Assembly: GCA_977017575.1 (NCBI GenBank)
Contig: CDRNVI010000017.1
Coordinates: 12,836-76,835 of the forward strand
Direction of reading: 5' to 3'
From: Paramoeba atlantica
Taxonomy: Eukaryota > Protista > Discosea
DNA length: 64,000 nucleotides
Position numbers and translations under genes: made by a program. Shown here piece after piece: positions 10,794-50,848 of the stretch. How positions within the stretch are numbered: position 1 is the first letter of the stretch; every line of letters starts with the position of its first letter. A model generated the notes under the pieces. That model searched no databases, was not told the origin of the DNA, and saw only the letters and a program-made list of their open reading frames with translations.

Positions 10794-10828
<35 letters not shown>
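10105..10828 (+). mobile_element. 3' fragment of CRE-like family F (RLE domain, 3'UTR, poly(A) 10798-10828)
   Basis: FQCSGC..EHQRSC..RSGPDLMI..YYDLTVVH, homologous to family E. Confidence 0.8.
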
Positions 10829-10830
<2 letters not shown>

Positions 10831-10864
10831 TTAACGATAAAGATACAGTTTCTGTACCTTGTTG
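10827..10864 (+). other. Spliced-leader-like exon at 5' end of element H
   Basis: AACTTTAACGATAAAGATACAGTTTCTGTACCTTGTTG; the 3' 19 nt match the trypanosomatid SL end (CAGTTTCTGTACTTTATTG, from memory) at 17 positions; no GT donor follows. Confidence 0.85.
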
Positions 10865-10900: not shown

Positions 10901-13900
10901 ATGAGGGAGGCTGATTCATGCGGCTCGACGACGATACGAGAAGATGACCTTTTTGCCCAAGAGGAGAAAACACACACGCCAGGCTCCTGGGACCAGTTTG
11001 AGGGTAATCAGCATCTTATCGCTGCAACTAGTACATACGATGAATCCCTCTACACGACGCCCATACCAGAAAATATTACACCAGCCTGGCAAGACAAAAT
11101 GGAAACGGCACTACAATCTTTGCACCGAGAGAAGCAGACACCTGACACGGGGATGATTTTATCGGCAGACGAAGAGAGAAATCATTCCAGCGTATCAAGA
11201 GACTGTGCCCCCAATACGTCTGGCAAAGGTCAAGAAGTAACAAGCCAAACCCCAGAGCGGTACGAACCACATTCCATGGCCACAGCGAGGCTTCTCCCAC
11301 GAAAAAGCCCTCTTTCTAGCCAAAAGTCGACGCCCAAAATTTTCGAGAGAGGGGTTAGTAAAGATTCCAAGACTCGCCAACCAGCTAGACGAGACACAAT
11401 GAGACGTCGCACCTGTCCAGTCGAAGTGTGCAACTGGAGCACCGCATCACACGGAGGGAAGTGGCAGGCCTACTACCATCACGTCGCAAGCCAACATAGC
11501 GATACTGTGCCTTCGGAATGGTGGGAAAAAGAAGGACGTTTCTTATGCCCCTCATGCGGCAAGCACTATGATCACAATAAAAAAGCTTCCCATGAGGAAA
11601 AATGTCAAGACTCCTTGGGCTCTTACACCTCGTCGCTAACCTGTGAGCCAGAAACCGAAGAGGCTTCCATTTCCCAAATTTACAAGGATTCGCTCCCGTC
11701 TCTTGATTGTGTCTGCTCTTACGCCATCAACACATGCAAAGATGTACCATTCCGATGCAGACAACAGTGGGCCTCCGTTTTGACTCAAACAATGGCTGCA
11801 GTGGTTAGAGAGAACTCGGTTGAGGCCTGGACACGCTTAGCGATGCTCCCAAAATGTGTCCTGCCCGCGCCCAAAAGAGGGGGACGAAAAGGAAATTCGT
11901 CCTATACCACGAAAACGAGCCAACGCATGGATCGCTGGGAATCCAGGGAATACGCGGCACTGTGGAACGAATCTGTTGCGCAAATGGTAAAGAAGCGGGA
12001 GAGGAGCGATGATGAGGAAGTGGACGAGTCCGGCAAGGCGGCGAAACGAGCCGAGTTGCTGGCCAGACAAGGGGAGTTTTCCCGTGCGATGGCAGCCCTT
12101 ACAGCAGCACCGATGGCACCTGAATCCGAAGAAACTTACGAAAAACTCCAATCGAAGCACCCAGGTAGATTGCCTTTATCATCTTCCGTCACATTCCGAC
12201 CCATAGAAGGAGAGCCTTTACATCTATCCGAAGGCGAAGTTGAAAAGGCACTACGCAGTTTCCGGCGCGGAACATCGGCTGGCACCATGGGCCTCCGCCC
12301 TGAGCATCTCCAGAGCGCCTTAGCAGCACACCCTGATGACAAGGTACAGCCGCTTTTCTATCTCAAGGAAGTCATGAACCTCTTGCTGTCCGGGAAAGGT
12401 TGTCTCCAAGTCCAGAAGTTCTTCGGCGGCGCCAGACTATGTGCCTTAGAAAAAGGAGAAAATGATGTCCGTCCTATTGCTGCCGGCGAAACAATAAGGC
12501 GACTTGTGAGCAAAGCGGCCTGCTCCGCAGTAAAGGAAAAGGCAAGCAAACTACTCTGGCCTCATCAATACGGAGTCGCAACACCTGCAGGGGCCGAACG
12601 CCTGATCCACCTGTGTAGGCACGTGATGGCCTCTCAGGCGGGAAGTTCTGATTTCACGCTATGTAAAGTGGATCTGCGAAATGCCTTTAACAACATCTCA
12701 AGAACTGCCTTTGCTGCACTTACGAGGGAGCACTTCCCGGAGCTCTCCCCGTGGGTTGAATGGTGTTACACCACCGAGAGTATTCTCACTTACGGTTTCC
12801 GTCAGATTTCTTCAAAGGAGGGTGTGCAACAAGGGGATCCGTTGGGTCCTTTACTTTTTTCCCTCGTCATGCAAATGGTTACTACCGAGATAGATCGACA
12901 ACTTCCTGGTCTTCTTAAGCTTAATCTGTGGTATTTGGATGACGGCATTCTCGGGGGGAAGGCTCAAGACGTCAGACGAGCTTTAGACATCATCGAACGA
13001 GTCGGCCCACAGTGGGGCATCTTCCTAAACGCCAACAAGTGCGAGGCGATCACACATCCTGAATCCGCCGAACACCTGGACAGCTTCGGCAACATCCCGA
13101 CGACTAAAAAGACAAGCGAGGGAAATTTTTCAATTTTAGGTAGCCCTGTAGGAACGACTGATTTCTGCACAGAATTTCTCCGTGAACACACCCTGTTGCC
13201 TGCTGAAGAATCCCTAGCCGCGATCGAATACATGGAAGACCCGCAAGTTTCCCTCGCACTCATCCGACAATGTGCTGGTTTCAGCCAAATGGCATATTCT
13301 CTTAGAACCACACCCACCAATTCCGTCCATGAGCTATGCGAAGAACTTGACACAGCAATACTACATACCACGGAACGCTCTATATGTCCTTTAAATGAAG
13401 ATGCTGCCGCACAAGTACAACGTCCAAAATCTTACGGTGGATTCGGGCTGCGCTCTTCAGCGATGCATGCCTCATCGGCGTACGTTTCCTCAGTCTCTTT
13501 CGCAGCGGATAAGGACAACTGGAACTCCCTCGACGCAAAAGATTTTGCTGATGCAGTACTGGACGTCAATTCACGAGCGGGCACCAGCGTCCTGGAAGAG
13601 AAAACCGGTCTAATTTCCCCTCAGCACGCTTCCTCTCTCTCTCACCTCAAAAAAGTACTGGGTCTCCGTGGATCAAAACGACCTCTCCCGGCGAATCTTC
13701 CCGTAGCACCACCCGGAGACACGACGACCCCTTACTTTGAACAAACGAAACTCGACCACGAGTTTTCATCTTCCAACGACCGAGTCGCACGCCAAAAGGT
13801 GCTCAGCCGTGCAATTTCTTCCCGCGAGTACACCGATGCATATCAGAAAGCTGATCCTCAAACGAGGGCACGTTGGATATCTCAATCTGGAAAAGGGGCA

Positions 13901-14740
13901 GGTGACTGGCTGTTTGTCACGCCCTCCAGGGAAAAGGGGCACGCCTTTACTAAAACGGAGTTCCGCACCCTGTGCACCTGGTGGCTAGGACAAAAAGTAT
14001 ATCCAGAAACACACCCCTGTCCCGTCTCAGGCTGCACGCTTCCGATGGGACCACAAGGAGACCACGCATTGGTCTGTAAACACGACTACGGGATCTCTGC
14101 GAGGCATAATGCCTTGGCCCTCCAGTTCTTTGACGTTTGTCAAAAGGCCAATTTGTCTCCGAAAAGGGAGCACAGCCTCGGCAACAGAGGTCCAGGGGGG
14201 GCACTCACAAGACCAGGGGATGTGTTCCTTCCGAGCTACACGCTCGGTAAAGGCCTTGTCTTTGATTTTGCGGTGACCCACGTCCAGCAACAGAAATATA
14301 CGGACCTGGTCCGTTCTGCTGGCATGGTAGCTGCAGGGGCCTTCGCAGAGAAATATGCAACGAACCACAAGCGTGGACAAAGGCAAGAGGCTATAGAGGC
14401 CGGGCATGATTTCACCGCCATGGTAGTGGAATCGTACGGATCATGGAGTCCGACGTCCCTCCATATGCTGAAGAAGATCGCGGGAAAAAGAGCCGCAACA
14501 TGTAAGGGTGATATGTCCGAGCAAGCGTCAATGTTTTTTCTTCTCCAGGACATGAACGTTACGCTCATGCGGTCTCAGGCACGAATGCTTGTAAGACGCA
14601 TGGCAGACGTGTATATCCATGCCAGTCTCGCTTTACTGCACGAGGCACCCTCTGACACCACACCAAATCGTGCCAGCTGCGGACCGGCAGGAGCGATCGA
14701 GCCTACAGTGCCTATTCTCACGCCTCGCCTTCGTGAGTGA
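10901..14740 (+). CDS. Family H polyprotein, 1279 aa: LsmAD-like, 2 ZnF, RT, CCHC, RLE
   Basis: First ATG 10901 (track start TTG lies in the SL); GSWDQF..STYDESLYTT, VRPIAAGE, VDLRNAFN, QQGDPLGP, YLDD, CP..GC..DH..C, RHN, RPGDVF..FDFAVTH. Confidence 0.93.
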   Translation: MREADSCGSTTIREDDLFAQEEKTHTPGSWDQFEGNQHLIAATSTYDESLYTTPIPENITPAWQDKMETALQSLHREKQTPDTGMILSADEERNHSSVSRDCAPNTSGKGQEVTSQTPERYEPHSMATARLLPRKSPLSSQKSTPKIFERGVSKDSKTRQPARRDTMRRRTCPVEVCNWSTASHGGKWQAYYHHVASQHSDTVPSEWWEKEGRFLCPSCGKHYDHNKKASHEEKCQDSLGSYTSSLTCEPETEEASISQIYKDSLPSLDCVCSYAINTCKDVPFRCRQQWASVLTQTMAAVVRENSVEAWTRLAMLPKCVLPAPKRGGRKGNSSYTTKTSQRMDRWESREYAALWNESVAQMVKKRERSDDEEVDESGKAAKRAELLARQGEFSRAMAALTAAPMAPESEETYEKLQSKHPGRLPLSSSVTFRPIEGEPLHLSEGEVEKALRSFRRGTSAGTMGLRPEHLQSALAAHPDDKVQPLFYLKEVMNLLLSGKGCLQVQKFFGGARLCALEKGENDVRPIAAGETIRRLVSKAACSAVKEKASKLLWPHQYGVATPAGAERLIHLCRHVMASQAGSSDFTLCKVDLRNAFNNISRTAFAALTREHFPELSPWVEWCYTTESILTYGFRQISSKEGVQQGDPLGPLLFSLVMQMVTTEIDRQLPGLLKLNLWYLDDGILGGKAQDVRRALDIIERVGPQWGIFLNANKCEAITHPESAEHLDSFGNIPTTKKTSEGNFSILGSPVGTTDFCTEFLREHTLLPAEESLAAIEYMEDPQVSLALIRQCAGFSQMAYSLRTTPTNSVHELCEELDTAILHTTERSICPLNEDAAAQVQRPKSYGGFGLRSSAMHASSAYVSSVSFAADKDNWNSLDAKDFADAVLDVNSRAGTSVLEEKTGLISPQHASSLSHLKKVLGLRGSKRPLPANLPVAPPGDTTTPYFEQTKLDHEFSSSNDRVARQKVLSRAISSREYTDAYQKADPQTRARWISQSGKGAGDWLFVTPSREKGHAFTKTEFRTLCTWWLGQKVYPETHPCPVSGCTLPMGPQGDHALVCKHDYGISARHNALALQFFDVCQKANLSPKREHSLGNRGPGGALTRPGDVFLPSYTLGKGLVFDFAVTHVQQQKYTDLVRSAGMVAAGAFAEKYATNHKRGQRQEAIEAGHDFTAMVVESYGSWSPTSLHMLKKIAGKRAATCKGDMSEQASMFFLLQDMNVTLMRSQARMLVRRMADVYIHASLALLHEAPSDTTPNRASCGPAGAIEPTVPILTPRLRE

Positions 14741-20038: not shown

Positions 20039-23000
20039 ATGCCCACATCCGTTGAAGAGCAAAATCCGACCTTCGAGGAGGAGGCGTCGTCTCACACACT
20101 TGGGTCCTGGGATCAATTTGCGGCAAACAAATCTTTAGCGAAGGGACCTAGCACGTACGATGAGCTAATCTACACCACAGCCCTCCCTAATGATATTCCT
20201 CAGGACTGGGAAAAGAGAACGGACGAAATCCTTCGAAGTATGAAGACGGCAACGCAGGACTCAACGCCAGATTTGGGGCATGCGAATGAACTATCAAGTG
20301 AAAGAACCGAGGAAGAGATACACTGCAGTGTGCGTCGGGACGATGAACCTTCCCCTTTCCATTTCGAGGGAACGCACTCAAATTCACCCAGCCAATTACA
20401 AACTTCAAACAGGGCTGTGAAGGAGAGATGCCTGCGTCGAACAAGGGGAATGGAAGGTGCCGTTGACACAGAGAACGCGATGATGTTTCCAGACCTCACG
20501 CCTACTGAACTTGACTTCACAATCACAACAAAACGCAAAGGTAGGAGAAAGAAGAAACGAATAAAACGAACGGCAACGACGTGTACTGACGGTACCAACT
20601 CTTCAAGCCCCGAGGGTGACGAGCACGAAGACAGCGTGACACCTGAGCCCACTCAAAACGGTAAACAAAAGCGCCGCCGAGACATAGCGAAAAGCTTCTC
20701 GAATTATTTTCCTACGACAGGTCACCGGACAGACAAAACACCAAGCGGCAAATCCCAACTTCCTCCGTCTGTAGCCGCATTCCGCAGCACGCCTCAGGAC
20801 TCTTTGAAAACTTGCCCAGTTAAAGGGTGCGTGTGGAAAACACTCGCTCATGGCGGCAGGTGGCAAGCTTACTACAACCACGTAGCTACAAGACACGCGA
20901 ATGAAGTGCCCGAATCCTGGTGGACGAACGAAGGGCGCTTTCTCTGCCAGAAATGCGGGCGACATTACGAAGAAGGCAAACGAGCAACACACGACAACGC
21001 TTGCAAAGGAACCTCGACTGACTCTGTAGCCAATCCCGCGAATAACTTGACGCAGAGTTCATTGGACCACGGTTCGCGCAGCACCGATGTCTCACAGAGT
21101 GTCCAACCTCTTCCTTTACCATCGCTTTCTGATATTTGCATGACTCCTATCAACACTTCTAGGGATGTTCCATTCCGATGCCGCTACCAATGGGCGAAAA
21201 CGCTCACCGATGTATTATCCTCCGTAGCCAGCGAGAACTCCGTAGCGGCATGGACCCGTCTCGGCATGCTGCCTAAATGCGTTCTACCGGCCCCGAACCG
21301 CGGGGGGCGCAAAGGTCGTCTTTCTTATGCCTCACATGTGACAAAAAGCCTAGAAAGGTGGGGAAAAGGGGAATTTACCGCTCTGTGGATTGAAGCGACC
21401 AAAAACAACACGAAGTCGTCGCACCCATCAACCAAAGACCAAGATCAAGACCAGGAGCTTGCGCAAGAAGTAAGAAGGGCAAAAGAACGATGCGAAAAAC
21501 TTGTACGCCAGGGTGAAGTCTCTCGTGGAATGAGTGCACTAACGGCGGCACCCTTTGCACCTGACAACGACGAAACGTACTGCAAGTTGATGGCAAAGCA
21601 TCCCACTCGTGCGCAGGACTGCATGCTTCAAGATCTCCCGTACCCTAACGCACCTCCCTTGAAAGTAAACGAAGAAGAAGTTAAGCACGCTTTGGGCAGC
21701 TTTCGCAAGGGATCATCTGGCGGAACGATGTCGCTGAGAGCTGAGCACCTTCAGATAGCACTACGTGCCCACGTGGACGAGAAAGTACACCCTCTCACCG
21801 CTCTTACAGACGTAGTCAATGTGCTTCTTTCTGGAAAAGCTCCATTCGAGATTCAGGAACGTTTCGCTGGGGCCAGATTGTGTGCACTTCAGAAAGGAGA
21901 ATGTGACGTCCGACCTATAGCCGCAGGCGAGACAATCCGTCGTTTGGTTGGTAAAGTGGCATGTCTAACAGCCAAGAAAAAAGCTAGTCGCTTGTTTAAA
22001 GGAATACAGTATGGGGTTGCCACGCCAGCCGGATCGGAGAGGGTGATCCACCTCTGCCGACAGACTATGTCCCGCCATGCCGATGACACGAACTTTGTGC
22101 TATGTAAGGTGGACCTAGCGAACGCGTTCAATAGAGTATCCAGATCTGCGTTCATCGCCTTACTTCGCAAACATTTTCCAGAATTGTCAGCATGGGTGGA
22201 GTGGACCTACTCCACGGATAGTCTCCTAACTTACGGTTCCAGAACTCTTCCATCATCCGAGGGGGTTCAACAAGGGGACCCCCTAGGGCCTCTCCTTTTT
22301 TCCCTCGTAATGCTCGAAGCCGCGAAAATGATCAAAGAAGCACTCCCAGGCAGTCTCCAGCTTCACCTCTGGTACCTCGACGACGGGGTAATAGCCGGTA
22401 AGGCCGAAGACGTCAGTTTCGCTTTAGAGACTCTTTCTCGAGTTGGTCCTAAGTGGGGTCTTCACATCAATACCTCTAAATGCGAAATAATAACGAACCC
22501 TGCCTCGGCACACCAAACTGCTCTTTTTTCCGATATTCCGGAACCCAAGATAAACCGCGAAGGAAATTTTGACATTCTTGGGAGCCCCATAGGCTCTGCT
22601 CAACATTGCATAGATTTCCTTACGACACACGCCGTGGAACCGGCAGAAGAGACCCTGGAAGCTATAGAAATGCTCGAAGATCCTCAAATTGCCTTGTCAT
22701 TGATCAGACAGTGTGCGGGTTTTTGTCAAATGGTCCATTCGCTTCGAACTACCCCACCACATGAGCTTTCTGCACTCTGTCAGCGCCTTGATGAAGCAGT
22801 CCTCCATGCGTATGAATGGAATATATGCCCGCTTAGCTCCTCAGCTCGATCACAAGTTCAACGCCCGAAACGGTATGGAGGTTTTGGTCTCCGATCTGCA
22901 TCTGCGCACCGCTCAGCGGCGTACGTGTCTTCAGTTGCTTTTGCTGCAGAGACGGATCGTTGGCTACCGTCAGATGCAGAAGGATTCTCTTCCGCAGTCC

Positions 23001-23980
23001 TGGACATCAATCGCCGGAGCGGAGGCCCCGTAGTTGATCCGGACACGGGAAGAGCATTAGAGGAGATCAGCTCCCCTTTTCCGACAGGATCTAGTCAAAG
23101 TACAGAAACGGACAATTCTTGCACCCCCCGTCAACGTGCCTTGAGCGACGCAATCTCGGCGCACGAATTTTCATGTGCGTACGCAGCGGCGGACAGTAGC
23201 ACTCGCGCGAGGTACACCTCTCAGACTGGAGATGGGGCCAGCAGCTGGGCATTTTGCATCCCATCAACAGAGCTTGGCCACGCTTACACACCCACAGAAT
23301 TCCGCGCCCTCTCCAGGTGGTGGTTAGGTGCCAAGGTCTACAACGAGTTGAGCACGTGCCCAATTAACACATGCCAACAACCTCTCGACCTCGAAGGAAA
23401 CCATGCAGTGTCTTGCAAAAGTGGGAATGGACTGATCTCCCGCCACAATGCGCTCATTACACAATTCACCGACACGTGCTCCAAGGCGAATTTATCACCT
23501 TCACGTGAGGTAAGCCTGGGGAACCTAGGGCCTGGCGGCTGTCCCACGAGGCCGGGCGATGTCTTTATTCCGGGCTATGAGAAAGCTCAAGGTCTGGTGC
23601 TTGATTTTGCTGTCACCCACGTTCAGCAACCTAAATACACGGACTTAGTCCGCAACGCTAACGGGGTGGCGGCAGGATCATTTGCGGAGCACTACGCCGC
23701 TTCTCACAAGGTGAAAGAGAGAGAGGAGGCGGAACAAGCAAAACATGTGTTTGTTGCCATGGTGGTAGAATCATATGGTGCTTGGAGTGCAAGTGCCCTA
23801 TCAATCCTTAGATGGGTTGGGAAGCATCGCGCCTCATGTTCCCAGGGGACTCTATCTCAAGAAGCAGCTACCCGTCAGCTGCTTCAAGAGCTTAACCTCA
23901 CCCTGATGCGTTCTCAATCGAGAATGCTTGTCTCACGCATGCCGGCTGAAGATCCACAACCGGCACTTATTTTGCAGTAG
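20039..23980 (+). CDS. Family I polyprotein, 1313 aa: LsmAD-like, ZnF, RT, CCHC, RLE
   Basis: GSWDQFAAN..STYDELIYTT; YLDD; RPGDVF..LDFAVTH. Confidence 0.93.
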   Translation: MPTSVEEQNPTFEEEASSHTLGSWDQFAANKSLAKGPSTYDELIYTTALPNDIPQDWEKRTDEILRSMKTATQDSTPDLGHANELSSERTEEEIHCSVRRDDEPSPFHFEGTHSNSPSQLQTSNRAVKERCLRRTRGMEGAVDTENAMMFPDLTPTELDFTITTKRKGRRKKKRIKRTATTCTDGTNSSSPEGDEHEDSVTPEPTQNGKQKRRRDIAKSFSNYFPTTGHRTDKTPSGKSQLPPSVAAFRSTPQDSLKTCPVKGCVWKTLAHGGRWQAYYNHVATRHANEVPESWWTNEGRFLCQKCGRHYEEGKRATHDNACKGTSTDSVANPANNLTQSSLDHGSRSTDVSQSVQPLPLPSLSDICMTPINTSRDVPFRCRYQWAKTLTDVLSSVASENSVAAWTRLGMLPKCVLPAPNRGGRKGRLSYASHVTKSLERWGKGEFTALWIEATKNNTKSSHPSTKDQDQDQELAQEVRRAKERCEKLVRQGEVSRGMSALTAAPFAPDNDETYCKLMAKHPTRAQDCMLQDLPYPNAPPLKVNEEEVKHALGSFRKGSSGGTMSLRAEHLQIALRAHVDEKVHPLTALTDVVNVLLSGKAPFEIQERFAGARLCALQKGECDVRPIAAGETIRRLVGKVACLTAKKKASRLFKGIQYGVATPAGSERVIHLCRQTMSRHADDTNFVLCKVDLANAFNRVSRSAFIALLRKHFPELSAWVEWTYSTDSLLTYGSRTLPSSEGVQQGDPLGPLLFSLVMLEAAKMIKEALPGSLQLHLWYLDDGVIAGKAEDVSFALETLSRVGPKWGLHINTSKCEIITNPASAHQTALFSDIPEPKINREGNFDILGSPIGSAQHCIDFLTTHAVEPAEETLEAIEMLEDPQIALSLIRQCAGFCQMVHSLRTTPPHELSALCQRLDEAVLHAYEWNICPLSSSARSQVQRPKRYGGFGLRSASAHRSAAYVSSVAFAAETDRWLPSDAEGFSSAVLDINRRSGGPVVDPDTGRALEEISSPFPTGSSQSTETDNSCTPRQRALSDAISAHEFSCAYAAADSSTRARYTSQTGDGASSWAFCIPSTELGHAYTPTEFRALSRWWLGAKVYNELSTCPINTCQQPLDLEGNHAVSCKSGNGLISRHNALITQFTDTCSKANLSPSREVSLGNLGPGGCPTRPGDVFIPGYEKAQGLVLDFAVTHVQQPKYTDLVRNANGVAAGSFAEHYAASHKVKEREEAEQAKHVFVAMVVESYGAWSASALSILRWVGKHRASCSQGTLSQEAATRQLLQELNLTLMRSQSRMLVSRMPAEDPQPALILQ

Positions 23981-24693: not shown

Positions 24694-24901
24694 ACGATAA
24701 AGATACAGTTTCTGTACCTTGTTGAATTAATTTTTCTTTCCCTATTTCTTTTATCCGGACAATGAGGGAGGCTGATTCATGCGGCTCGACGACGATACGA
24801 GAAGATGACCTTTTTGCCCAAGAGGAGAAAACACACACGCCAGGCTCCTGGGACCAGTTTGAGGGTAATCAGCATCTTATCTCTGCAACTAGTACATACG
24901 A
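24691..24901 (+). mobile_element. 5' fragment of family H (partial SL 24692-24724, 5'UTR, half of LsmAD) joined to family E RLE region
   Basis: Matches 10831-11040; junction microhomology CGA. Confidence 0.88.
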
Positions 24902-27432
24902 AGGCAGGACTTCCGTGTGTTATCGAACCGCGAATTCACTCCTCATTTTATTGTACAAAGTGTAAATGCTCTATTTCTGCGGAGGTTTCTGACCAACATC
25001 CATGTAAGGCGCGCAGGATTCGATCTGGCCCCGACCTCGCTATCATGTGGCCCCATATGGGAGAAGTCCTCTATGATTTCACAGTGGTTCACACTTGCTG
25101 CAACAGTTACAAGAAACAAACAAGCAACTACCTACTGCAGCAAGCCCAGGAAAGGAAGTTCAAGAAATATGTGACAGAGAAAGGTGTGGACAGTGAGGCA
25201 TTTCGTTGCATCGCCGCCTCAGATTGTGGTGTGTTGCACAACGACACAAAACAACTATTAAAGGCGTTGGCTCAGCGCGCGAATCGAAAATATGAAAACG
25301 TGCGTGAGGCTTTTCAGCTGGAACTTGAAAAGCTATCGGCTTACACGGTAGTGTCTCAACTCCGAGATTACATCACCGATGAAAAGTGGATTGGGAGTTT
25401 ACGACTCTAAAAGAGTTCACTACCACACGTATATCTCCGTACAAATAAGTATTGATTAGTTGCCTTCGAATATATTAGGTCCTTTCGAATGTATTAGATA
25501 CTGCTACTTCTGCATTGATTCTTCATCACGTTTGACAACAATTGGCGCGTATACAATAATTGATCCGGGAACTGTTCTTTTTTACTTTGAGGCTTTGCTG
25601 GTTTCGAGGGGACAAGTGTCATCCATGCTGTTTTATGCTGTTTTATGTGGTCCAACATATATTCGATTATTGAAAATTGTTGATCTTACCATGTGAATGG
25701 AACGATGCGTATTGCATCGGTACACGAACATTGCCCCGTAGTTTGTTCAAATTAGTTTCTACGGATAGTTGCCGGGGATTTCCAGACGGCGAGTAAGTTC
25801 AAAAAAAAAAAAAAAAAAAAGCGATGACCGTAAATTTCTGGTAGAGTGAAGTTCGAGTTGTGTCATCGCAACTTTCCTTTTGCGAGTGGAAAAAGGTTAT
25901 AAGTCACTAGAGTAAAATAATGTATAGTATAGTATGCTAAAAGTATAATTACATGGTTCCCCCCGGAGGGGGCAAAATCAGGTACATATATGTATATGTG
26001 CCCCGTAGGGCCACGGTCAAAGAATAAATATTTTCTTCAAGCAATTCTTTCCGTAAACTCTAAGGATAACCGATCACCTAGGCGACCCTTGGAAACACGA
26101 AGGCAACACCAACAGACTATTAAGGACAGCACCCTCGGCGAACAAACGCCGACACGCTCTCAGCCAGCCCACCAGATCCAATCACCTCCAAAGCATTCCT
26201 CCGGCACAAAACCCATGACTAGCGAAACTGGTTGTTCCGAAGCACAATCGGACGGTAGGCGCGAAGACTTTGGCAACAGATATGCCCCACGAAACGGAAG
26301 CGACAAGCCCCCACCACTTCCGCAGAGCGCTCCCAAACACCGCATCTGTCCTGCTGAAGGATGCGCCTGGCGCACGATTGCACATGGAGGGTCTTGGCAA
26401 GCATTTTATAACCACGTAGCGTACCACCACAGTACCGGCGTCCCGGCTGCATGGTGGGCAGCGGAAGGCAAGTTCCTTTGTGAAACGTGCGGCAAACACT
26501 ACACGCTCAACCGTAAAACTACGCACCCGAAGACCTGCATCGGTCAATCAAGTCAAGCAGCACAAATGTCAGTAGATATTTTTTCGCAGCACTCCATCGT
26601 AACAGAAACCGCCGAATTACCTACTTTGGCAAGTGTCTGCACACTCGCGAAGAGCACATGTAAAGACGTGCCCCACCGATGCCGTCAGCTGTGGGCGGAG
26701 ATCTTAACCTCGGCAATTTTCTTCAACCTCGGCAATTTTCTTCATTTCAGTGCTCCGGATGCCAGAATAGTGTAACCGAGGAAAATCTCACAGAACACCA
26801 GCGCAGCTGTCGCGGCAGTGTCCGCAGATCTGGGCCCGACCTTATGATCTACTGGGCAGACGGTCCGATGTATTATGACCTAACTGTAGTTCACGAGTTT
26901 TCAGCAGCTCACATAAACAAAACGCCTCAAAAAATGATGAACGAAGTCATCACGAAGAAACGCGACCGTTACGTAACTTCTGGGATGATTGCGAATGATC
27001 GTTTCATGTGTATCCCTGTCCTTTCGGGTGGAGCGCTACATAAGCATACAAAACGTCTATTAACAGCTTTAGCAGATCGTTGCCTTATTTAGAATTCAGG
27101 AGCGATGTCTGACCCAGATGGAGCGATAACTCTAGAGCGCCCAAAACTCCCTTTCAGCTCGGGCTGTCGATCCACCAGGTTCAATTTCTCCTTACGCTTT
27201 TTAAGACTGAGAGGATAAAAATGGAGGCTCTCCAAGAAGACGTGCAGAGCGGCAGTATTAGGGAAGTTGGAAAGAAGTGTGAAGGTGAGTAGTCAAAGGC
27301 TGCGAGTTGCAGCAAACAGATCGTGCGTCCTTCTAATGTTGAAGGCTTGAAAGTAGTAGTGCTTGATATGCTTTTTTTTGTTTACTAAAAGTTTACGAAA
27401 AGAATTGTACAATGGAAATTTTGATTTCTGAG

Positions 27433-27469
<37 letters not shown>

Positions 27470-30400
27470 TTAACGATAAAGATACAGTTTCTGTACCTTG
27501 TTGAATTATTTTTCTTTCCCTATTTCTTTTATCCGGACAATGAGGGAGGCTGATTCATGCGGCTCGACGACGATACGAGAAGATGACCTTTTTGCCCAAG
27601 AGGAGAAAACACACACGCCAGGCTCCTGGGACCAGTTTGAGGGTAATCAGCATCTTATCGCTGCAACTAGTACATACGATGAATCCCTCTACACGACGCC
27701 CATACCAGAAAATATTACACCAGCCTGGCAAGACAAAATGGAAACGGCACTACAATCTTTGCACCGAGAGAAGCAGACACCTGACACGGGGATGATTTTA
27801 TCGGCAGACGAAGAGAGAAATCATTCCAGCGTATCAAGAGACTGTGCCCCCAATACGTCTGGCAAAGGTCAAGAAGTAACAAGCCAAACCCCAGAGCGGT
27901 ACGAACCACATTCCATGGCCACAGCGAGGCTTCTCCCACGAAAAAGCCCTCTTTCTAGCCAAAAGTCGACGCCCAAAATTTTCGAGAGAGGGGTTAGTAA
28001 AGATTCCAAGACTCGCCAACCAGCTAGACGAGACACAATGAGACGTCGCACCTGTCCAGTCGAAGTGTGCAACTGGAGCACCGCATCACACGGAGGGAAG
28101 TGGCAGGCCTACTACCATCACGTCGCAAGCCAACATAGCGATACTGTGCCTTCGGAATGGTGGGAAAAAGAAGGACGTTTCTTATGCCCCTCATGCGGCA
28201 AGCACTATGATCACAATAAAAAAGCTTCCCATGAGGAAAAATGTCAAGACTCCTTGGGCTCTTACACCTCGTCGCTAACCTGTGAGCCAGAAACCGAAGA
28301 GGCTTCCATTTCCCAAATTTACAAGGATTCGCTCCCGTCTCTTGATTGTGTCTGCTCTTACGCCATCAACACATGCAAAGATGTACCATTCCGATGCAGA
28401 CAACAGTGGGCCTCCGTTTTGACTCAAACAATGGCTGCAGTGGTTAGAGAGAACTCGGTTGAGGCCTGGACACGCTTAGCGATGCTCCCAAAATGTGTCC
28501 TGCCCGCGCCCAAAAGAGGGGGACGAAAAGGAAATTCGTCCTATACCACGAAAACGAGCCAACGCATGGATCGCTGGGAATCCAGGGAATACGCGGCACT
28601 GTGGAACGAATCTGTTGCGCAAATGGTAAAGAAGCGGGAGAGGAGCGATGATGAGGAAGTGGACGAGTCCGGCAAGGCGGCGAAACGAGCCGAGTTGCTG
28701 GCCAGATAAGGGGAGTTTTCCCGTGCGATGGCAGCCCTTACAGCAGCACCGATGGCACCTGAATCCGAAGAAACTTACGAAAAACTCCAATCGAAGCACC
28801 CAGGTAGATTGCCTTTATCATCTTCCGTCACATTCCGACCCATAGAAGGAGAGCCTTTACATCTATCCGAAGGCGAAGTTGAAAAGGCACTACGCAGTTT
28901 CCGGCGCGGAACATCGGCTGGCACCATGGGCCTCCGCCCTGAGCATCTCCAGAGCGCCTTAGCAGCACACCCTGATGACAAGGTACAGCCGCTTTTCTAT
29001 CTCAAGGAAGTCATGAACCTCTTGCTGTCCGGGAAAGGTTGTCTCCAAGTCCAGAAGTTCTTCGGCGGCGCCAGACTATGTGCCTTAGAAAAAGGAGAAA
29101 ATGATGTCCGTCCTATTGCTGCCGGCGAAACAATAAGGCGACTTGTGAGCAAAGCGGCCTGCTCCGCAGTAAAGGAAAAGGCAAGCAAACTACTCTGGCC
29201 TCATCAATACGGAGTCGCAACACCTGCAGGGGCCGAACGCCTGATCCACCTGTGTAGGCACGTGATGGCCTCTCAGGCGGGAAGTTCTGATTTCACGCTA
29301 TGTAAAGTGGATCTGCGAAATGCCTTTAACAACATCTCAAGAACTGCCTTTGCTGCACTTACGAGGGAGCACTTCCCGGAGCTCTCCCCGTGGGTTGAAT
29401 GGTGTTACACCACCGAGAGTATTCTCACTTACGGTTTCCGTCAGATTTCTTCAAAGGAGGGTGTGCAACAAGGGGATCCGTTGGGTCCTTTACTTTTTTC
29501 CCTCGTCATGCAACTGGTTACTACCGAGATAGATCGACAACTTCCTGGTCTTCTTAAGCTTAATCTGTGGTATTTGGATGACGGCATTCTCGGGGGGAAG
29601 GCTCAAGACGTCAGACGAGCTTTAGACATCATCGAACGAGTCGGCCCACAGTGGGGCATCTTCCTAAACGCCAACAAGTGCGAGGCGATCACACATCCTG
29701 AATCCGCCGAACACCTGGACAGCTTCGGCAACATCCCGACGACTAAAAAGACAAGCGAGGGAAATTTTTCAATTTTAGGTAGCCCTGTAGGAACGACTGA
29801 TTTCTGCACAGAATTTCTCCGTGAACACACCCTGTTGCCTGCTGAAGAATCCCTAGCCGCGATCGAATACATGGAAGACCCGCAAGTTTCCCTCGCACTC
29901 ATCCGACAATGTGCTGGTTTCAGCCAAATGGCATATTCTCTTAGAACCACACCCACCAATTCCGTCCATGAGCTATGCGAAGAACTTGACACAGCAATAC
30001 TACATACCACGGAACGCTCTATATGTCCTTTAAATGAAGATGCTGCCGCACAAGTACAACGTCCAAAATCTTACGGTGGATTCGGGCTGCGCTCTTCAGC
30101 GATGCATGCCTCATCGGCGTACGTTTCCTCAGTCTCTTTCGCAGCGGATAAGGACAACTGGAACTCCCTCGACGCAAAAGATTTTGCTGATGCAGTACTG
30201 GACGTCAATTCACGAGCGGGCACCAGCGTCCTGGAAGAGAAAACCGGTCTAATTTCCCCTCAGCACGCTTCCTCTCTCTCTCACCTCAAAAAAGTACTGG
30301 GTCTCCGTGGATCAAAACGACCTCTCCCGGCGAATCTTCCCGTAGCACCACCCGGAGACACGACGACCCCTTACTTTGAACAAACGAAACTCGACCACGA

Positions 30401-32439: not shown

Positions 32440-35400
32440 ATGTCCTGCCGCGAACGTCCATGTACACACTCCTCAGAAAATGAAGCGTCCTTCGCAAGAA
32501 TGGTGAACACAGACGACGTTACATTGAACGAGGCGGAGAAATCACACCTTCTTGGTAGTTGGAATCAATTTGAGGGCAACAGACATCTCATCTCAGCTCC
32601 CAGTACCTATGACGAAAGTCTGTACACAACGGAAATCCCGAGGAATATCCCTGCAGAATGGCTACGCCTCGCTGAAAAAAAATCAGACGACCGCGAAACA
32701 CCGGACACGGGACACCACCTAGCCGAGAATGAGGAAATACAACACTGCGCAGTACAACGAAAGGGTACGACAGCCAACCTTGCAGCTAGTATTTCTACTC
32801 TGAAATCAGGGCCAGCAATCAACGCTGCACTGAAGGATGCAATATCACGTCAACAGCGCAATGCGGATGGGATCAAAGGAGTTTCAAAGACGGATAACCG
32901 ATCACCTAGGCGACCCTTGGAAACACGAAGGCAACACCAACAGACTATTAAGGACAGCACCCTCGGCGAACAAACGCCGACACGCTCTCAGCCAGCCCAC
33001 CAGATCCAATCACCTCCAAAGCATTCCTCCGGCACAAAACCCATGACTAGCGAAACTGGTTGTTCCGAAGCACAATCGGACGGTAGGCGCGAAGACTTTG
33101 GCAACAGATATGCCCCACGAAACGGAAGCGACAAGCCCCCGCCACTTCCGCAGAGCGCTCCCAAACACCGCATCTGTCCTGCTGAAGGATGCGCCTGGCG
33201 CACGATTGCACATGGAGGGTCTTGGCAAGCATATTATAACCACGTAGCGTACCACCACAGTACCGGCGTCCCGGCTGCATGGTGGGCAGCGGAAGGCAAG
33301 TTCCTTTGTGAAACGTGCGGCAAACACTACACGCTCAACCGTAAAACTACGCACCCGAAGACCTGCATCGGTCAATCAAGTCAAGCAGCACAAATGTCAG
33401 TAGATATTTTTTCGCAGCACTCCATCGTAACAGAAACCGCCGAATTACCTACTTTGGCAAGTGTCTGCACACTCGCGAAGAGCACATGTAAAGACGTGCC
33501 CCACCGATGCCGTCAGCTGTGGGCGGAGATCTTAACTAGCGCTTTGAAGGCAGCAGTACAAGAAAACTCAGTAGCGACATGGACACTCCTTGCCATGCTC
33601 CCAAAGTGTGTGTTACCGGCCCCTCGACGCGGAGGGCGTAAAGGCTACATGGCGTACTCATCCCACGTTCGAAAGTGCATGGAGCGATGGATGGCAAAGG
33701 ACTACACTCAGTTGTGGAAAGAGGCAGCCGCTAATAGACGACAACGAAACCCTGACCCCATTTCGGAACAACATGAGGCCCAGAAAGCCGTCATCCGCGC
33801 AGAACTTCTAGTCAGACAAGGTGAATTCTCTAGAGGTATGGCTGCCTTAACCGCAGCGCCGATGGCAGATGAAAACGAAGAAACATATGCGAAGCTGTTG
33901 GAGAAGCATCCGGCACGTCAAACTACTACGGAAGCCCTCGCCGACCTTCCACCACACGTCAAACATTTGAACCTCGAAGAATCCGATATTAAAGTAGCCA
34001 TAAACAGTTTTCGTCGAGGATCTTCAGCAGGTACGATGGGTCTCCGCCCGGAACACTTACAATCCGCGCTTCTTTCCTACGAAGACAAGAATGTTCACCC
34101 GCTTCAGGAACTCACAAACCTAGCTAATCATCTTCTTTCTGGCAAAGCACCCATCGAAGTACAAGCATATTTCGCAGGTGCGCGACTATGTGCGCTCAAG
34201 AAGGGGGAAAACGACGTTCGCCCTATCGCAGCGGGGGAGACTATTCGTCGGTTAGTGAGCAAGGCCGCATGCAGTAGTGTCCGAATGAAAGCGGGGAAAT
34301 ACTTTGAAGCACAACAATATGGAGTGGCCACCCGAGCAGGGGCAGAACGTATCATTCACCTTTGTAGGCTTGCAATGGACACTGACACAACAAATTCCGA
34401 TATAGTTTTATGCAAAGTTGATTTGTCCAACGCATTTAACAACGTTAGCCGTGACGCATTCATCAGTCTCACCAGAGAGCACTTCCCGGAATTGTCCAGA
34501 TGGGTAGAATGGTGCTACGTCGAAACCAGTAGCTTAACTTACGGGCACCGTTTCGTACCGTCCGCGGAAGGGGTACAACAGGGCGATCCCCTCGGTCCTC
34601 TTCTCTTTTCCTTAGTCATGTTGGAGGTTACCAAACAAATTCAGTCGTACACGGAACTTCTTCTAAACCTGTGGTACTTAGACGATGGAGTTTTTATAGG
34701 GAAAGCAGAAGAAGTAAGAAAAGCCCTCGACATACTTGATCACCTCGGACCAGGTCAGGGACTACACCTCAATAGCAAGAAATGCGAGATCATCACACTA
34801 CCCTCATCTGCACACCAAACATCTCTTTTCCCAGATATACCAAAAGACAAGCAAAACACAGAAGGAAATTTCGACATCCTAGGAAGCCCTATCGGATCCC
34901 ACAAACACTGCGCCGAATACCTCATGACCAATGCGATCGAACCAGCAGAAGATACTTTAGTTGCTTCCAGTTTAATTGAGGACCCGCAGGTCGCCATGGC
35001 ACTGATACGACAATGTGCTGGCTTTTGTCAACTGGTCTACGCCCTACGTACAACACCCCCACAATGCATACAACGCGTTTGCGAACATCTAGACAATTCA
35101 CTGTTGAGCACAGCTGAGGAAATACTTTGCCCACTGAACGCCCCTGCCCGCGCTCAGATCCAACGCCTGAAGAGACACGGAGGTTTCGGTCTGCGTTCAT
35201 CGGAAATGTACTCGTCTTCAGCTTACGTAGCATCTGTGGTGTTCGCAGCAAGCAAGGACGGATGGAATCCACTGGACGCGGAAGGTTTTTCACCTGCCGT
35301 CAACGACGTGAACGCAAAAGCCGGAGGCACTCTCGTAGATCCCGAAACGGGTCGTTTCCTTTGCCCCACCACCCAACAGCGCGACCTATCACATCCCTCT

Positions 35401-35827
35401 TTTCCCCCAAAGCCACCCATTCACTCTTCCACACAGGTCGATACAGCCCGCGAGCCATCAGACACCGGACCTTTTTTAGATGCTGACCCGCCGTTGGGCG
35501 CTGACCTTGACATAGATATTGACCCGCCAGAATGGGACGAAAGTATCATCCCACGTCAGAAAGATATCATCCGCGCTATAGGGGAAAGGGAGTTTAATAT
35601 AGCATACTGTTCCGCTGATACACGAACGCGAACCAGATGGGTATCACAATCAGGGAAAGGGGCTAGCAGTTGGGCATTCGTCACCCCATCGAAGGACCTG
35701 GGCTATGCATTCAAACCCGCGGAGTTTCGAACCTTGTGTCGATGGTGGTTGGGGGTGGATGTATACGGAGAAACTCGTCCATGTCCCTCGGATGAATGCA
35801 AACTCCCTCTGGGTCCTGAAGGGGATC
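32440..35827 (+). CDS. Family D polyprotein, part 1 (LsmAD-like, ZnF, RT, start of CCHC)
   Basis: First ATG 32440; GSWNQFEGN..STYDESLYTT; YLDD. Confidence 0.9.
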
Positions 35828-36034
35828 CAATCCAATCCAATCCAAAATACCGACAAAGTCGGCTAAAATACTTAGCACTTTCACATCAAACACTTCCATC
35901 TCTATCACCTCCAAATTCAGAGTTTTTGTGCCTCCAATACTAGAGCACACAAACCGCATAAAGTAATGGAATATAAAAACTTCCTCAAGGCATATTCTAG
36001 CACACGTACGGAGATACACAGCAAGCACTCACAC

Positions 36035-42565: not shown

Positions 42566-45500
42566 ATGTCTGGTATCATCCCCCCCGCAGACACACTTCC
42601 TCCCATAGACGACAACAGCGGAAATCCGGACCACGAAGCCGAAGCCATGGAGACGGACGACAAATGCTTAGAAATTAATGGCAGAACTCACCGACCGGGG
42701 TCTTGGGACCAATTTAAAGGAAACGAACATTTAATCACGGGGACGAGCACATACCATGAAGACCTTTACACGACCCCCATCCCTCAGAATATTCCTGAAG
42801 ATTGGATCCGCCGAACGAACGCGATCGTAGGTGGGGTTAATGAAACACCGGACACAGGTCACACGGAGGTCGAAAATGAAGAGATGCAACACTCCGCTGT
42901 TATCAGGCAAGTAACGCCAGCGAAGAAGACGAAAGAGGCTTTGAATGCTACACAGCATCTAAGTACACCACTCAAAACTGCTCTATCCGCCCAAGCACGT
43001 AGCAATGAGGACATTAAAGGTCACTCCAAGAAAACCCCTACTCCACGGAGAAATAAGCTCATCCGATACCGGGTAGACCCAGAGACACCTTCACTCTTGC
43101 ATCCTTATGAACTTATTCCGGGTCCATCTCAAGAGCAACCAGGAAGAAGACACGAAACCCAGAATATTGAAAACGCTGGCGTTAGCCTCGCTGAGCCCAA
43201 CTCATTGTCCCAAGGAAAGTCTGCCGCGCTCCGAGAGTGCCCGGCCCAGGGATGTTCATGGCGCAGTCCGTCGCATGGCGGATCCTGGCAAGCCTTCTAT
43301 AACCATGTCGCATGCCGGCACGGTAACAGCATCAACCTTTTTGTAAAATTTTGCAAAATGGCGGATGCGTCCGGTGCGCAGGAGTCCACGCGCATTATGA
43401 ATCTTCTTTTGCGTTCCACGCTTGATCGGGGGGACTTGTTTCGTCCTCACAAGGGCGGGAGGAGTCCTGCTAAGCTCCGCGCGAGGTCGTTGAGACAGTT
43501 GTTGCTGCGTATGGAAAAGGGGGCGAGGCTGGCAGTGGTGTGGAGATACGGGTATAGTGATGATTTGAAGTTGTGGGAGGGGGTCGTCGAACGATGGCTT
43601 GGCTTGTGGCGCATTCGATACACCGAGCGCCCGCGTGAAACACTTCCGTTTCCCCCTTTAAGTCCTTTGATCGTTCTCTGCGCTGCTCGTGTTTTCAAAC
43701 CTTTTTCCCTGTCCAGCAGAAAAAAGCGACATCGCAAAAGTAGGGCATTGTCCGGCAAACGTGCTCTTCATGACTCGGAGGGTCCTAGAGGCCCCGCTGT
43801 GAAGGGAAAGCTTAACGTGGCAACCTTGAATGTGACTAGTCTAAAGCTAAAGGGTGAGGATGAGTTTAGTTTGAGAAAGTGCGGGCACCTGTATGAAGTA
43901 CTTAATTTTATGAATATGAAAGGAATCAATATTCTGGGAATGCAGGAGACAAGGTACAGATTTTCGTCTTCTGAAAAGTCGGAGGTACTTTGCCGCAAAG
44001 TACAATACCAGAATTCGGAATATTTCTTCAACCTCATTACAGCTCGCGCGAAGGATGCGTACAATGGAATGGGCATCGTAAGCTCAATGCCTATGTCCAA
44101 GGTATTTCGAGTAAGTGAAAGGATCATGGTTGGTGAATTTGAGATGGAAGACGGAGTTGGGACAGTTGTTAATGTTTATGCTCCTACAAGAGATTCTTCG
44201 GAACTCGCGCTATCAACATTTTACGGAGATTTAGAAAAGTGTTGCACAAAAGCATTAGAAAACAATCTGCGACGCCCTCTTTTCGTGATAGGAGATTTCA
44301 ACGCCCCCTTAACGCTTATATCAAACAAAGAAATGGACCCACTGGCTGTTGCTCGTCTCAAAGGTCTTTCCTGTGCTATGGGATGCAAATCCGCGCATAG
44401 TCTGTGCCCTAGTAGTAGGAAGTGGACGTGTGAGCTGCCAAACAAAACTTTGCGTCAATTGGATCATATATTTATAAGCAGCCGATTCGCATCAGCCATT
44501 CAGCGCCACAAGGTCGTAAAGGCACCAGTTCCCACAACGCACTGCTGTGTAATTGCCAGTGTAAAAATTAAATGGAGAGCAGTAAACCCGAAAGCTGCAA
44601 ATAATTATCTCTCTTGGGCCTTTCTTCGAAACAGTGAAAATCTTCAAGCATTTATTACCAAAGTTCACTCTCAATCTGAGAAGGGGGGTAATATCAAGCA
44701 AGGGTGGGAACGACTTTCGAACAGTATAATAACCGCCGCCAAAAATTTTAAGAAGCCACAAAAACGTACGATAAACAGAGAACCTATTAAGCATGTGAAG
44801 ATAAATAACCTGCGGGGCCTTTATCAGAGAAGCAGACAGAAGACTACGTTTAATGAGTTAATAAAAGAACATAAAAAAGATATTGAACAGACCATTTCGG
44901 AAGAATGCTTAGAACTTGAGAACAAGCTTCGCAAGAATCACTCAAATCCATGGAGAACTCTTCGGCAAATATGTGGACAATACCGTACTCAGTTCAATAC
45001 AAATGGTGAGACGCGTGATATGAAACTACAAGCGATCCGTGAACATTTCTTAAAATTCAGTAATTATGATGCAGGAGATCCAAATATCAGTTTCGACCCT
45101 ATTCCACCATTATTCGTGCCGATCGAGGATGGCCCATTTATTGTTGAGGAGTTGACTTTGTCAGTGAAGCATTTTGGGAGAGGACGAGCACCCGGAAGCG
45201 ACGGAATACCTATGGAGGCACTACAAGCTATCGCAAGTCACGAAGTTCTAAGAGAGCAGCTTTTAGGTATAATAAACAAAGTTTATGAGACCGGGTCTAC
45301 GGATGAAGCTTGGCGAATGACACTCCAGATACCCATACCAAAGAAAGGGGATCTCACTGACATTTCAAACTGGAGGCCGATATGTGTGGTGAATAGCGTT
45401 GTTAAACTGATGAATCACATGATTCTTTCACGCATTCGGCCCAGCGTAGAAGGTTTCCTACGCGATAATCAGTATGGGTTTCGGCCAAACAGATCTACAG

Positions 45501-47449: not shown

Positions 47450-47648
47450 GGAGAGAATTGATGGAATTATTTCTTTGCCAACTTAGAATACCTTGAGGAT
47501 TATTCATAGGTTATCGGAAAAATATTGTTTGTTTGTACCGTATCAGACACATATAAACTCTGAACGTGGAAGCGATAGATGAAAGCTTTCAAGGTGTAAA
47601 CATTAAGTTTTTCAACCGACTTTACGTCGGTCTTTTGGATTGGATTGG
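43334..47648 (+). mobile_element. Full-length APE-RT-RNase H element, family B
   Basis: 5' AACCTTTTTG, intact ORF, CCGAC/GTCGG stem-loop, GGATT tail, TSD. Confidence 0.94.
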
Positions 47649-47662
47649 ACGGTAACAGCATC

Positions 47663-50600: not shown

Positions 50601-50848
50601 CCGTAGAGGCAGGATGCGACTTTACGGCCATGGTTGTCGAAAGTTATGGCGCCTGGAGCCCCAGCGCTTCAGCCGTGCTCCGCAAAGTCGGTGAGAGGTG
50701 TTCGCACGCCTCGGGGGGTCTACTTTCGGAAGGTGAGGCAACGAGCCGAATCTTCGCTGAACTAAACATAACCCTTATGCGCTTTCAAGCGCGCATGATG
50801 GTTGCTCGTTCACCTTCCGAAGACCCCATCGCAACTCTGGAGGAATAG
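47663..50848 (+). CDS. Family G polyprotein, part 2 (ZnF2, RT, CCHC, RLE)
   Basis: FLCTSCGRH, QQGDPLGP, YLDD, RPGDIY..LDFAVTH. Confidence 0.9.
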   Translation, partial: PNEWWYREGRFLCTSCGRHYDNHKRSSHTHSCKGTKTVALLSPELLTPPNEVSTAPTPENTNFELPPLPSVCSLQLSTCKDVPYRCRQIWEEILSSAIRNAVSENSLQAWTLLAMLPKCVLPAPHRGGRKGHMAYASHAYKCMQRWAEQEYSDLWSEAIVACRKKQKSPTEFPDEDEKAAIRAELLVRHGELSRGLASLTSDPMAPDDDETFEKLLEKHPRRLQIDSCENCPPPNCAPLELDEREVAKTLKSFNRGSSAGTMGLRPEHLQAALLVHGNDFLRSLTKLTNHLLAGKAPSEVQAHFAGARLCALSKGENDVRPIAAGETLRRLASKAVCNAIRPKASELFEGKQYGVAATAGAERVIHMCRLAMSSNMENPNFVMCKVDLRNAFNNVSRAAFLPLVQEYFPELFPWINWCYSDPSSLTYGARFISSEEGVQQGDPLGPLLFSLVALELSEAINLQTDIPAQLWYLDDGVLVGQAQEVRDALDTIARVGPQWGLYLNTSKCEIITSPSSAHQADYFPDIPDEKINSQGNFDILGSPVGSADHCSAYLLSHALEPAEDTLDAITNIQDPQVALALIRQCAGFCQMVYAMRSTPPQSLIHLCSRLDDFLMTAIEAIICPLDRSAQSQAQRLKRHGGLGLRSAALHASAAYVASVAFASATDSWDPTDAEGFSEAILDINQKAGTALLDPRGRVLTTPNAPCEKALSAPYSYRKRRRPPPGNDPHPPDEPPGHILRTTSRTANTPTDAYPLSTPLYGSEECQDMLPPQWPKGKIPRQRVISYAIAAHAFSQEYETTDARTRARWISQCGTGASSWAFVTPSKDLGHAFTPTQFRTLARWWLGVDIYHEDSTCPMPKCSLPLDSKGDHALSCKHGHGIVTRHNAVTDQFADVCSRARLAPQREKSLGNRGPGGALTRPGDIYLPSLFLGNPIVLDFAVTHAQQLKYTDKVRNASWVAAGSFAEHYSSMEKGKQRREAVEAGCDFTAMVVESYGAWSPSASAVLRKVGERCSHASGGLLSEGEATSRIFAELNITLMRFQARMMVARSPSEDPIATLEE

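Follow-up and report, generated by a model that had tools for sequence, protein, structure and literature searches.

An LsmAD domain of the Ataxin-2/PBP1 type at the N-terminus of putative restriction-like endonuclease retrotransposons in a Paramoeba atlantica assembly

The stretch of DNA considered here, referred to as the window (64,000 nucleotides (nt); positions 12,836 to 76,835 of contig CDRNVI010000017.1 of a Paramoeba atlantica assembly), holds several retrotransposons devoid of long terminal repeats (non-LTR), one of which, element H, serves to introduce the subject of this report, an LsmAD domain of the kind found in Ataxin-2, Pbp1 and PBP1. Element H is on the forward strand, as are all the LsmAD blocks of the window described below. 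The poly(A) tail of the element upstream (10798-10828) abuts its 5′ end, which is a DNA copy of a spliced-leader (SL) exon (10829-10864), and a 36-nt 5′ untranslated region (UTR) separates this copy from the first ATG, at 10901. From there a single open reading frame (ORF) of 1279 amino acids (10901-14740, with its stop at 14740) encodes, in order, LsmAD, a variable linker, zinc fingers, reverse transcriptase (RT) and a putative restriction-like endonuclease (RLE). The LsmAD-like domain (10973-11200; Pfam PF06741, 22.3 bits, E 1.9e-4) begins 24 codons after the ATG. The part at 10982-11200 translates as GSWDQFEGNQHLIAATSTYDESLYTT...DEERNHSSVSR and is in frame with the rest of the ORF, just where a prior reading made from the DNA letters alone (the sequence-only reading) had put it; its motifs follow one another as H..GSWDQF..N..L...STYDESLYTT.IP, a helix, TPDTG and EE..HSSV.R. 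Two zinc-finger-like motifs recognized by inspection (C..C..H..H and C..C..H..C; 11414-11605) lie 3′ of LsmAD and linker. The RT core (12452-13066; Pfam RVT_1, 65.5 bits, residues 519-723 of the protein when read from 10898) has its YLDD at 12932-12943, and a C-terminal CCHC with RHN, RPGD and FDFAVT (14018-14278), assigned to the restriction-like endonuclease by inspection, is collinear with a relative, P0006, to which we return.

The three other families in which the sequence-only reading had placed the block all have it at the N-termini of their ORFs: element I at 20093-20338 (19.3 bits; ORF 20039-23980, 1313 amino acids), element D at 32545-32760 (21.4 bits; ORF from an ATG at 32440 to 35943, its C-terminal end missing) and element G at 42689-42907 (20.7 bits; ATG at 42566). 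Element G is interrupted at about 43300 by a long interspersed nuclear element (LINE) with an endonuclease of the apurinic/apyrimidinic kind (APE), with RT and with RNase H, and its 3′ half is found at about 47600-50848. Alignment of the N-termini of H, I, D and G yields 28 invariant residues with flanks that cannot be aligned, which agrees with the original description of a shared block followed by a linker without detectable similarity. Two further occurrences were added: a second copy of H with the domain at 27612-27839 (its ATG at 27540, its frame interrupted at 28709) and an incomplete 5′ fragment of the H type (24834-24965) whose LsmAD block ends after STYE.

Every full-length copy has the same order of parts. 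The poly(A) of the previous element is followed by 0-3 extra bases, a complete SL exon, a 5′UTR of about 30-60 nt and the first ATG; within the ORF, 25-120 variable residues precede LsmAD, after which come a non-alignable linker that is basic or Ser/Thr-rich, the two zinc-finger motifs, RT with YLDD, and the endonuclease region with its C-terminal CCHC, RHN, RPGD and FDFAVT; a structured 3′UTR and a poly(A) tail complete the element. Because this order is fixed in all full-length copies, LsmAD is part of the element and not of a flanking gene. The domain stands behind SL, short 5′UTR and first ATG in every family, and so is as integral to the elements as had been proposed. A second RVT_1 match in the element ORFs scores 61.6 bits, and CP..GC...GDHALVC, RHN, RPGD and FDFAVT occur in the order expected for RLE elements and are conserved in relatives, as judged by motif inspection only. 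The label ‘CRE-like’ that the elements had received is not established: the domain order fits an RLE element, but the insertion into SL genes that defines CRE was not seen; what is present is a complete SL exon spliced to the element's own 5′UTR, directly behind the previous poly(A) and not inside SL RNA genes. At the 5′ junctions at 19975, 24706 and 42503, 0-3 extra or variant bases (gat, g and ct) separate the upstream poly(A) from the SL copy; these may be untemplated additions or cap-proximal variants of full-length insertions.

The element block is a true homologue of LsmAD, and its homology is settled. PF06741 is the top Pfam match for all four window N-termini (19.3-22.3 bits, E 1.9e-4 to 1.5e-3), though each falls just below the gathering cut-off of 25 bits for this family, which tells against the homology. 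Such sub-threshold scores are a peculiarity of the families in the window. A six-frame scan of the whole assembly gave 102 PF06741 matches, nearly all of them above the cut-off and 32 within open frames of at least 1200 amino acids, and at least about 96 element copies in the genome match LsmAD over the cut-off. One complete ORF of 1401 amino acids (L033) has LsmAD (28.9 bits) and RVT_1 (56 bits) in the same protein, and the N-terminus of L051 reaches 31 bits. The profile comparison that had been suggested as a check comes out in favor of the domain, since none of the 17 N-termini chosen to represent families matches a Pfam family other than LsmAD, which 16 of them do match (best E 2e-8). A hidden Markov model built from the four window blocks alone retrieves the genome's own PBP1/Ataxin-2 protein (host PBP1) with an E-value of 1.7e-23. 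When a profile of the 17 element families is set against host PBP1 with hhalign, the probability is 99.4% and E is 2.5e-21, with 89 columns aligned onto residues 119-214, exactly the LsmAD of that protein. Pfam scores understate the similarity because the WDQF..N motif common to elements and host sits upstream of the Pfam model, the alignments to which begin at STYDE. The S, T, E, Y, T, T and EE of the LsmAD motifs are invariant across elements and host, while the final motif has drifted in the elements (LFSSV in some families, H(C/S).V in others).

That there is no real domain at all, and that a short motif arose by chance or convergence or the elements merely landed in PBP1 pseudogenes, is hardly credible. 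The domain is short, and the four window copies do score under the gathering cut-off. It is nevertheless ruled out by the E-value of the element profile against the host, by the exclusive match of 16 of the 17 families to LsmAD, by the constant position of the block between SL/5′UTR/ATG and zinc fingers in about 100 copies from at least ten families, and by amino acids that stay conserved despite saturated synonymous sites.

The ESM Atlas clusters closest in language-model features are LsmAD clusters without exception (0.92). An AlphaFold2 (AF2) model of the element LsmAD shows short helices, a single long one and no globular fold (pLDDT 68, pTM 0.27), and the ESM Atlas shapes nearest to this low-confidence model are Ataxin-2-family clusters at TM scores of just 0.26-0.38. 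Sequence search found no LsmAD chain in the PDB. Word-indexed searching of a database of 5.8 billion protein sequences returned nothing for host PBP1, its E-values being too harsh for a 70-residue domain, and for the element LsmAD only P0001, from an assembly of the same organism, so that the blank says little. The yeast Pbp1 string given by the sequence-only reading could be verified in part, from its quotation in a published survey (PMC12898128).

Only LsmAD was captured, and the Sm domain before it and the PAM2 after it are absent. SM-ATX (PF14438) and MLLE (PF00658) were each found in cellular genes of the genome only and in none of its elements; a regular expression for PAM2-like motifs matched host PBP1 only (FLNPNARAFTP) and no element ORF; and no HNPY-like motif of the MKT1-binding type was found in element ORFs. 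The center of the captured domain has been remodelled, with an invariant TPDTGH in place of the host's N.QHAVDRG and about 8 residues fewer. A small N-terminal domain of another kind stands at the start of another RLE family, upstream of the window (L034:90-3419, on G000:C17), and likewise of the APE-type LINE that splits element G (43300-47449); it is not SM-ATX by Pfam. It was considered as the missing Lsm domain and rejected, PF14438 finding none in elements.

The two best PF06741 matches in the genome (53 bits) are two alleles of one cellular gene. Its predicted product of 823 amino acids, with SM-ATX (31.5 bits), LsmAD (49 bits) and the PAM2-like FLNPNARAFTP, is by its domain content of canonical Ataxin-2/PBP1 architecture. 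Single-copy cellular genes (PBP1, those for poly(A)-binding proteins (PABPs) and a Sm-ATX-like ORF of 355 amino acids) each occur twice, at equal scores, on contigs C44/C66, C39/C40 and C44/C70, and the assembly seems to hold two haplotypes. A second LsmAD gene, at G000:C163:169015-169329 (L003, L032), is split by an intron, lies on an AT-rich contig (34% G+C) and has the usual form WDQFSANKELFGV / DEEDLYSGV. Its probable source is another eukaryote within the assembly, the presence of which is suggested by the AT-rich, intron-bearing contigs, C163 among them. PF06741 matches here, and probably in related genomes, are for the most part transposon ORFs and not Ataxin-2 paralogues.

The SL core of the elements is CAGTTTCTGTAC, which we take to be kinetoplastid-like, judging it against the trypanosomatid spliced leader. 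Dispersed through the genome are 163 copies in which the SL exon's 3′ part adjoins a conserved SL intron (GTACATTTTGC...CCCGGAAACGGGC), their 5′ ends breaking at varied points (examples are L036-L038, at G000:C2:38803, C3:18104 and C3:71391; 160 further sites are of the same kind). No match was given by Rfam for the SL-like loci, and the SL sequence was not found in the literature. The fragments resemble the SL RNA gene fragments reported to be ‘littering’ the genome of Perkinsela (PMC5601477), and likenesses to that organism extend to the G+C content of about 48% and to a PBP1 of more than 800 amino acids with a PAM2 of the form LNPNA..F.P (PMC5601477, PMC12898128). From the fit of these features to the published description we infer that the host of the elements is a Perkinsela-like kinetoplastid endosymbiont of Paramoeba.

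In a maximum-likelihood tree of the ORFs minus their LsmAD region all carriers fall in one clade (SH-aLRT 82), whose only members without LsmAD are two copies truncated at the 5′ end and, from the split element G, its 3′ half. At least ten families make up the clade, the longest paths within it measuring about 1.3 substitutions per site, and a tree of the LsmAD domain itself agrees with the ORF tree in its main groups. Since all carriers form one clade and its domain-less members are only truncated or split copies, one capture, with vertical descent within the element lineage thereafter, is the simplest reading. A second capture or gene conversion was considered for L061 and L064, the core of which is closest to that of the host (27 of 36 residues), and was rejected, as the LsmAD tree groups them with their neighbors in the RT tree and not with the host.

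As to the source, host and elements share H..GSWDQF(K)xNEHL..G.STYDE.LYTT.IP.N, including residues upstream of the Pfam model. The core of host PBP1 is identical to the element cores at 20-27 of 36 residues, as many as between element families. The lineage-specific residues that they share, NEHL,.G.STY and IP.N, differ from those of the C163 gene (KELFGV..SF) and of yeast Pbp1 as quoted (PMC12898128), which points to the PBP1 of the host lineage as the donor; the single uptake was most likely from an mRNA of that gene. The suggestion that an ancestral element had captured a host LsmAD is thus in accord with the single carrier clade, and the most likely donor can be given. A point on the other side is that the choice of donor rests on comparison with two cellular LsmAD genes.

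Retention under selection had also been proposed, with the ratio of non-synonymous to synonymous substitution rates (dN/dS) as a check. In a 46-codon core, synonymous sites are saturated between families in nearly all pairs, dN is 0.07-0.5, and the few dN/dS values that can be computed are 0.03-0.32; amino acid identity of the core between families is 46-87%. Saturated dS together with low dN/dS indicates that the region is translated and that the LsmAD protein sequence is under strong purifying selection.

To place these elements among their relatives, the first 1200 residues of H were compared by phmmer with 1.84 billion cluster representatives, which gave 16,033 relatives, and domains were examined in the best 150. 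Among those 150, LsmAD occurs only in the query's own cluster, P0003 and P0046, and the latter two, clusters found in ENA only, presumably derive from the same-organism assembly that yielded P0001. The closest foreign relatives, P0005 and P0006, have 42% identity by phmmer (38% for P0006 by BLASTP). Both are from Joint Genome Institute (JGI) data, P0005 (L039:529-5661) being on a metagenome contig of 59% G+C. They are collinear with the elements from the zinc fingers through the endonuclease, lack LsmAD and have instead, C-terminal to the endonuclease, a PABP-type MLLE (46.8 and 49.3 bits; cut-off 27). A weak MLLE-like stretch was noticed in P0018. In the next group, P0008 (L040:810-4904) and P0012 have an N-terminal Prim-Pol (PF09250; 27.2 and 30.7 bits, above the Pfam cut-off), and other members of the best 150 have sub-threshold matches to OTU, Ulp1 and RNase H. 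The ORF ends of this lineage accumulate varied host or viral modules; judged by the domains predicted in them, the accessory ends are fluid, and two of the modules, LsmAD and MLLE, come from the PABP/Ataxin-2 axis. It was also seen that a foreign relative (L040:700-760; 59% G+C, from a Logan run) begins immediately behind an A-run, so that a preference for landing sites of this kind may extend beyond this genome to the lineage at large.

What LsmAD might do for an element has to be approached from what is reported for Ataxin-2. Alone, its LSmAD is poorly folded, does not bind RNA and assists the LSm domain (PMC11898529), and in flies LSm/LSmAD suffice for polysome association (PMC5485521). These reports, and the non-globular AF2 model, are the grounds on which the element LsmAD may be seen as a poorly folded, motif-based protein-docking module, its motifs being WDQF, STYDE.LYTT and EE...S.V. 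Being N-terminal, it would leave the ribosome first and could dock the nascent ORF protein to a conserved partner of PBP1's LsmAD, the docking site being translating, polyadenylated messenger ribonucleoproteins (mRNPs) of the PBP1 type. Through docking, the RT would stay with the SL-capped and poly(A)-tailed mRNA that encodes it, which would provide for cis preference, ribonucleoprotein (RNP) assembly and perhaps mRNA stabilization, before its insertion at A-runs. The residues that are invariant in the elements are those shared with the host LsmAD, which suggests to us that an ancestral protein contact has been kept. The MLLE of the sister lineage makes a poly(A)-mRNP theme plausible, although it is not proof. 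A docking function on PBP1-type mRNPs is put forward tentatively, as a possibility slightly less likely than not.

Several points weigh against it. LSM12 binds the LSm domain and PABP the PAM2 of Ataxin-2, and the partner of LsmAD is unknown (PMC11166328). Deletion of LsmAD in flies and human cells leaves stress-granule recruitment and mRNA target choice unchanged, and Lsm plus LsmAD alone are insufficient for mRNA targeting (PMC7946432, PMC11166328). The elements are without PAM2, the motif whose connection with PABP and poly(A) is established, which leaves a direct poly(A)/PABP link through LsmAD unsupported. No element sequence was present in one possibly-RNA run of the organism, and no expression data were found. 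The idea of the sequence-only reading that LsmAD may steer the RT toward poly(A) RNAs or RNP granules finds no support in published work, where the links run via the PAM2 that is absent here (PMC11898529, PMC11166328, PMC7946432). A prediction of the complex between host PBP1 SM-ATX and element LsmAD scored 0.00 with the fold of the partner uncertain, and is evidence neither way; an AF2 model of host PBP1 residues 1-230 rendered the LSm part as helices, the alignment being too thin, and is unusable.

That LsmAD alone was captured, and not the regions connecting PBP1 with LSM12 (LSm) or PABP (PAM2), would also suit a decoy, in which the element LsmAD mimics that of PBP1 and titrates or displaces a host factor that silences or sequesters element mRNA. 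Such a factor might be a DDX6/DHH1-type repressor or a granule factor, and LsmAD would be its antagonist and not a hitch-hiker; contact of the ATXN2 LSm/LSmAD region with DDX6 has been reported (cited in PMC12345631 and PMC11166328). The many copies could potentially give a high dosage. A decoy, on the other hand, would have no need to be joined to the RT protein's N-terminus throughout the families. The RT proteins of non-LTR elements are, besides, usually made in very small amounts, and on balance a decoy is unlikely. If instead the module has been re-purposed, its role would be unrelated to the partners of PBP1, and might lie in an intramolecular contact with the body formed by zinc fingers and RT, in binding the conserved RNA fold of the 3′UTR or in serving as a localization signal. 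The remodelled middle of the domain, with its element-specific TPDTGH and deletion relative to the host, and a C-terminal motif that drifts from LFSSV in some families to HC.V in others would fit such a change. The element-invariant positions, however, are the ones conserved between elements and host, as expected if the ancestral contact has been kept, and a re-purposed module seems to us improbable. The best explanation overall is, in our estimate, a single capture of the LsmAD of host PBP1, its selective retention and its use as an mRNP-docking module, an account that we consider reasonably probable taken as a whole.

Searches for LsmAD or ‘Lsm-associated domain’ in combination with retrotransposon or reverse transcriptase found no relevant paper, and neither did a search for MLLE in a retrotransposon. 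According to a 2026 survey LsmAD is a hallmark of Ataxin-2 and is confined to that protein; its text and 14 supplementary files describe many chimeras and have no reverse transcriptase, RVT, retrotransposon or endonuclease among them (PMC12898128). In a mobilome curated in 2025 for 57 trypanosomatids, CRE is depicted as zinc finger (ZF), RT and RLE only (PMC12278014), and the Perkinsela genome paper has retrotransposon-like sequences adjoining SL fragments and does not describe their domains (PMC5601477). The earlier remark that no non-LTR element with LsmAD is known therefore stands, none being described in the literature or databases searched, and LsmAD at the N-terminus of an RT protein is a new domain architecture both for the LsmAD family and for non-LTR elements.

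The elements offer a clean case of a retrotransposon having captured part of a host mRNP scaffold. LsmAD is essential, yet its partners and function are unknown, and the elements have kept it for long under selection with neither LSm nor PAM2, which argues for an autonomous activity. The diverged element LsmADs are also so many natural variants with which to map the important residues. The main value lies in this natural handle on LsmAD function. That the sister lineage captured MLLE in parallel suggests that the interface being exploited is the poly(A)-mRNP. That a protist-wide RLE lineage has repeatedly adopted host PABP/Ataxin-2 pieces, LsmAD N-terminally and MLLE C-terminally, to lock its RT onto polyadenylated mRNPs is a wider and rather doubtful proposition; were it correct, the LsmAD-only element protein would be a natural separation-of-function experiment, in which LsmAD works alone, and a route to its partner.

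Compared with the LsmAD of Ataxin-2, Pbp1 and PBP1, the element domain has WDQF..N, STY/FDE.LYTT, an amphipathic helix and (D/E)EE..(F/H)S.V in equal order and spacing, and is likewise predicted to be weakly structured and helical. It differs in occupying, by itself, the N-terminus of a protein with RT and endonuclease, with no SM-ATX before it and no PAM2 or long disordered tail after it, in having the shorter, element-specific TPDTGH where Ataxin-2 has the central N.H.A.DRG, and in its presence in about 100 copies as against one gene. With the CRE clade (CRE1, CRE2, SLACS and CZAR) the elements have in common a kinetoplastid-type host, a poly(A) tail, physical association with SL sequence and a single ORF with N-terminal zinc fingers, RT and putative C-terminal restriction-like endonuclease, a likeness judged by domain order. 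CRE elements occupy a fixed site in SL RNA genes, whereas here the SL exon copy is at the element's own 5′ end, derived from trans-spliced mRNA, and new copies lie behind A-runs or poly(A) tails; published CRE elements, moreover, consist of ZF, RT and RLE, with no LsmAD (PMC12278014).

Among RLE elements more generally, as in the LsmAD carriers, the N-terminal region is a hot spot for added modules. Accessory domains are familiar from NeSL, with its Ulp1-type protease, and from R2, with its Myb and zinc fingers. The additions of which we are aware are enzymes or nucleic-acid binders, in contrast to LsmAD, which is neither an enzyme nor an RNA binder but part of a host mRNP scaffold. L1 and Alu depend on a poly(A) tail and PABPC1, and if the function suggested above holds, the likeness to them would be that the host's poly(A)-mRNP is put to use in assembling the RNP for retrotransposition on a template that is polyadenylated. 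For L1, PABP is a host factor to be recruited; the LsmAD of these elements and the MLLE of the sister lineage are parts of the PABP/Ataxin-2 machinery for which the elements' own ORFs code.

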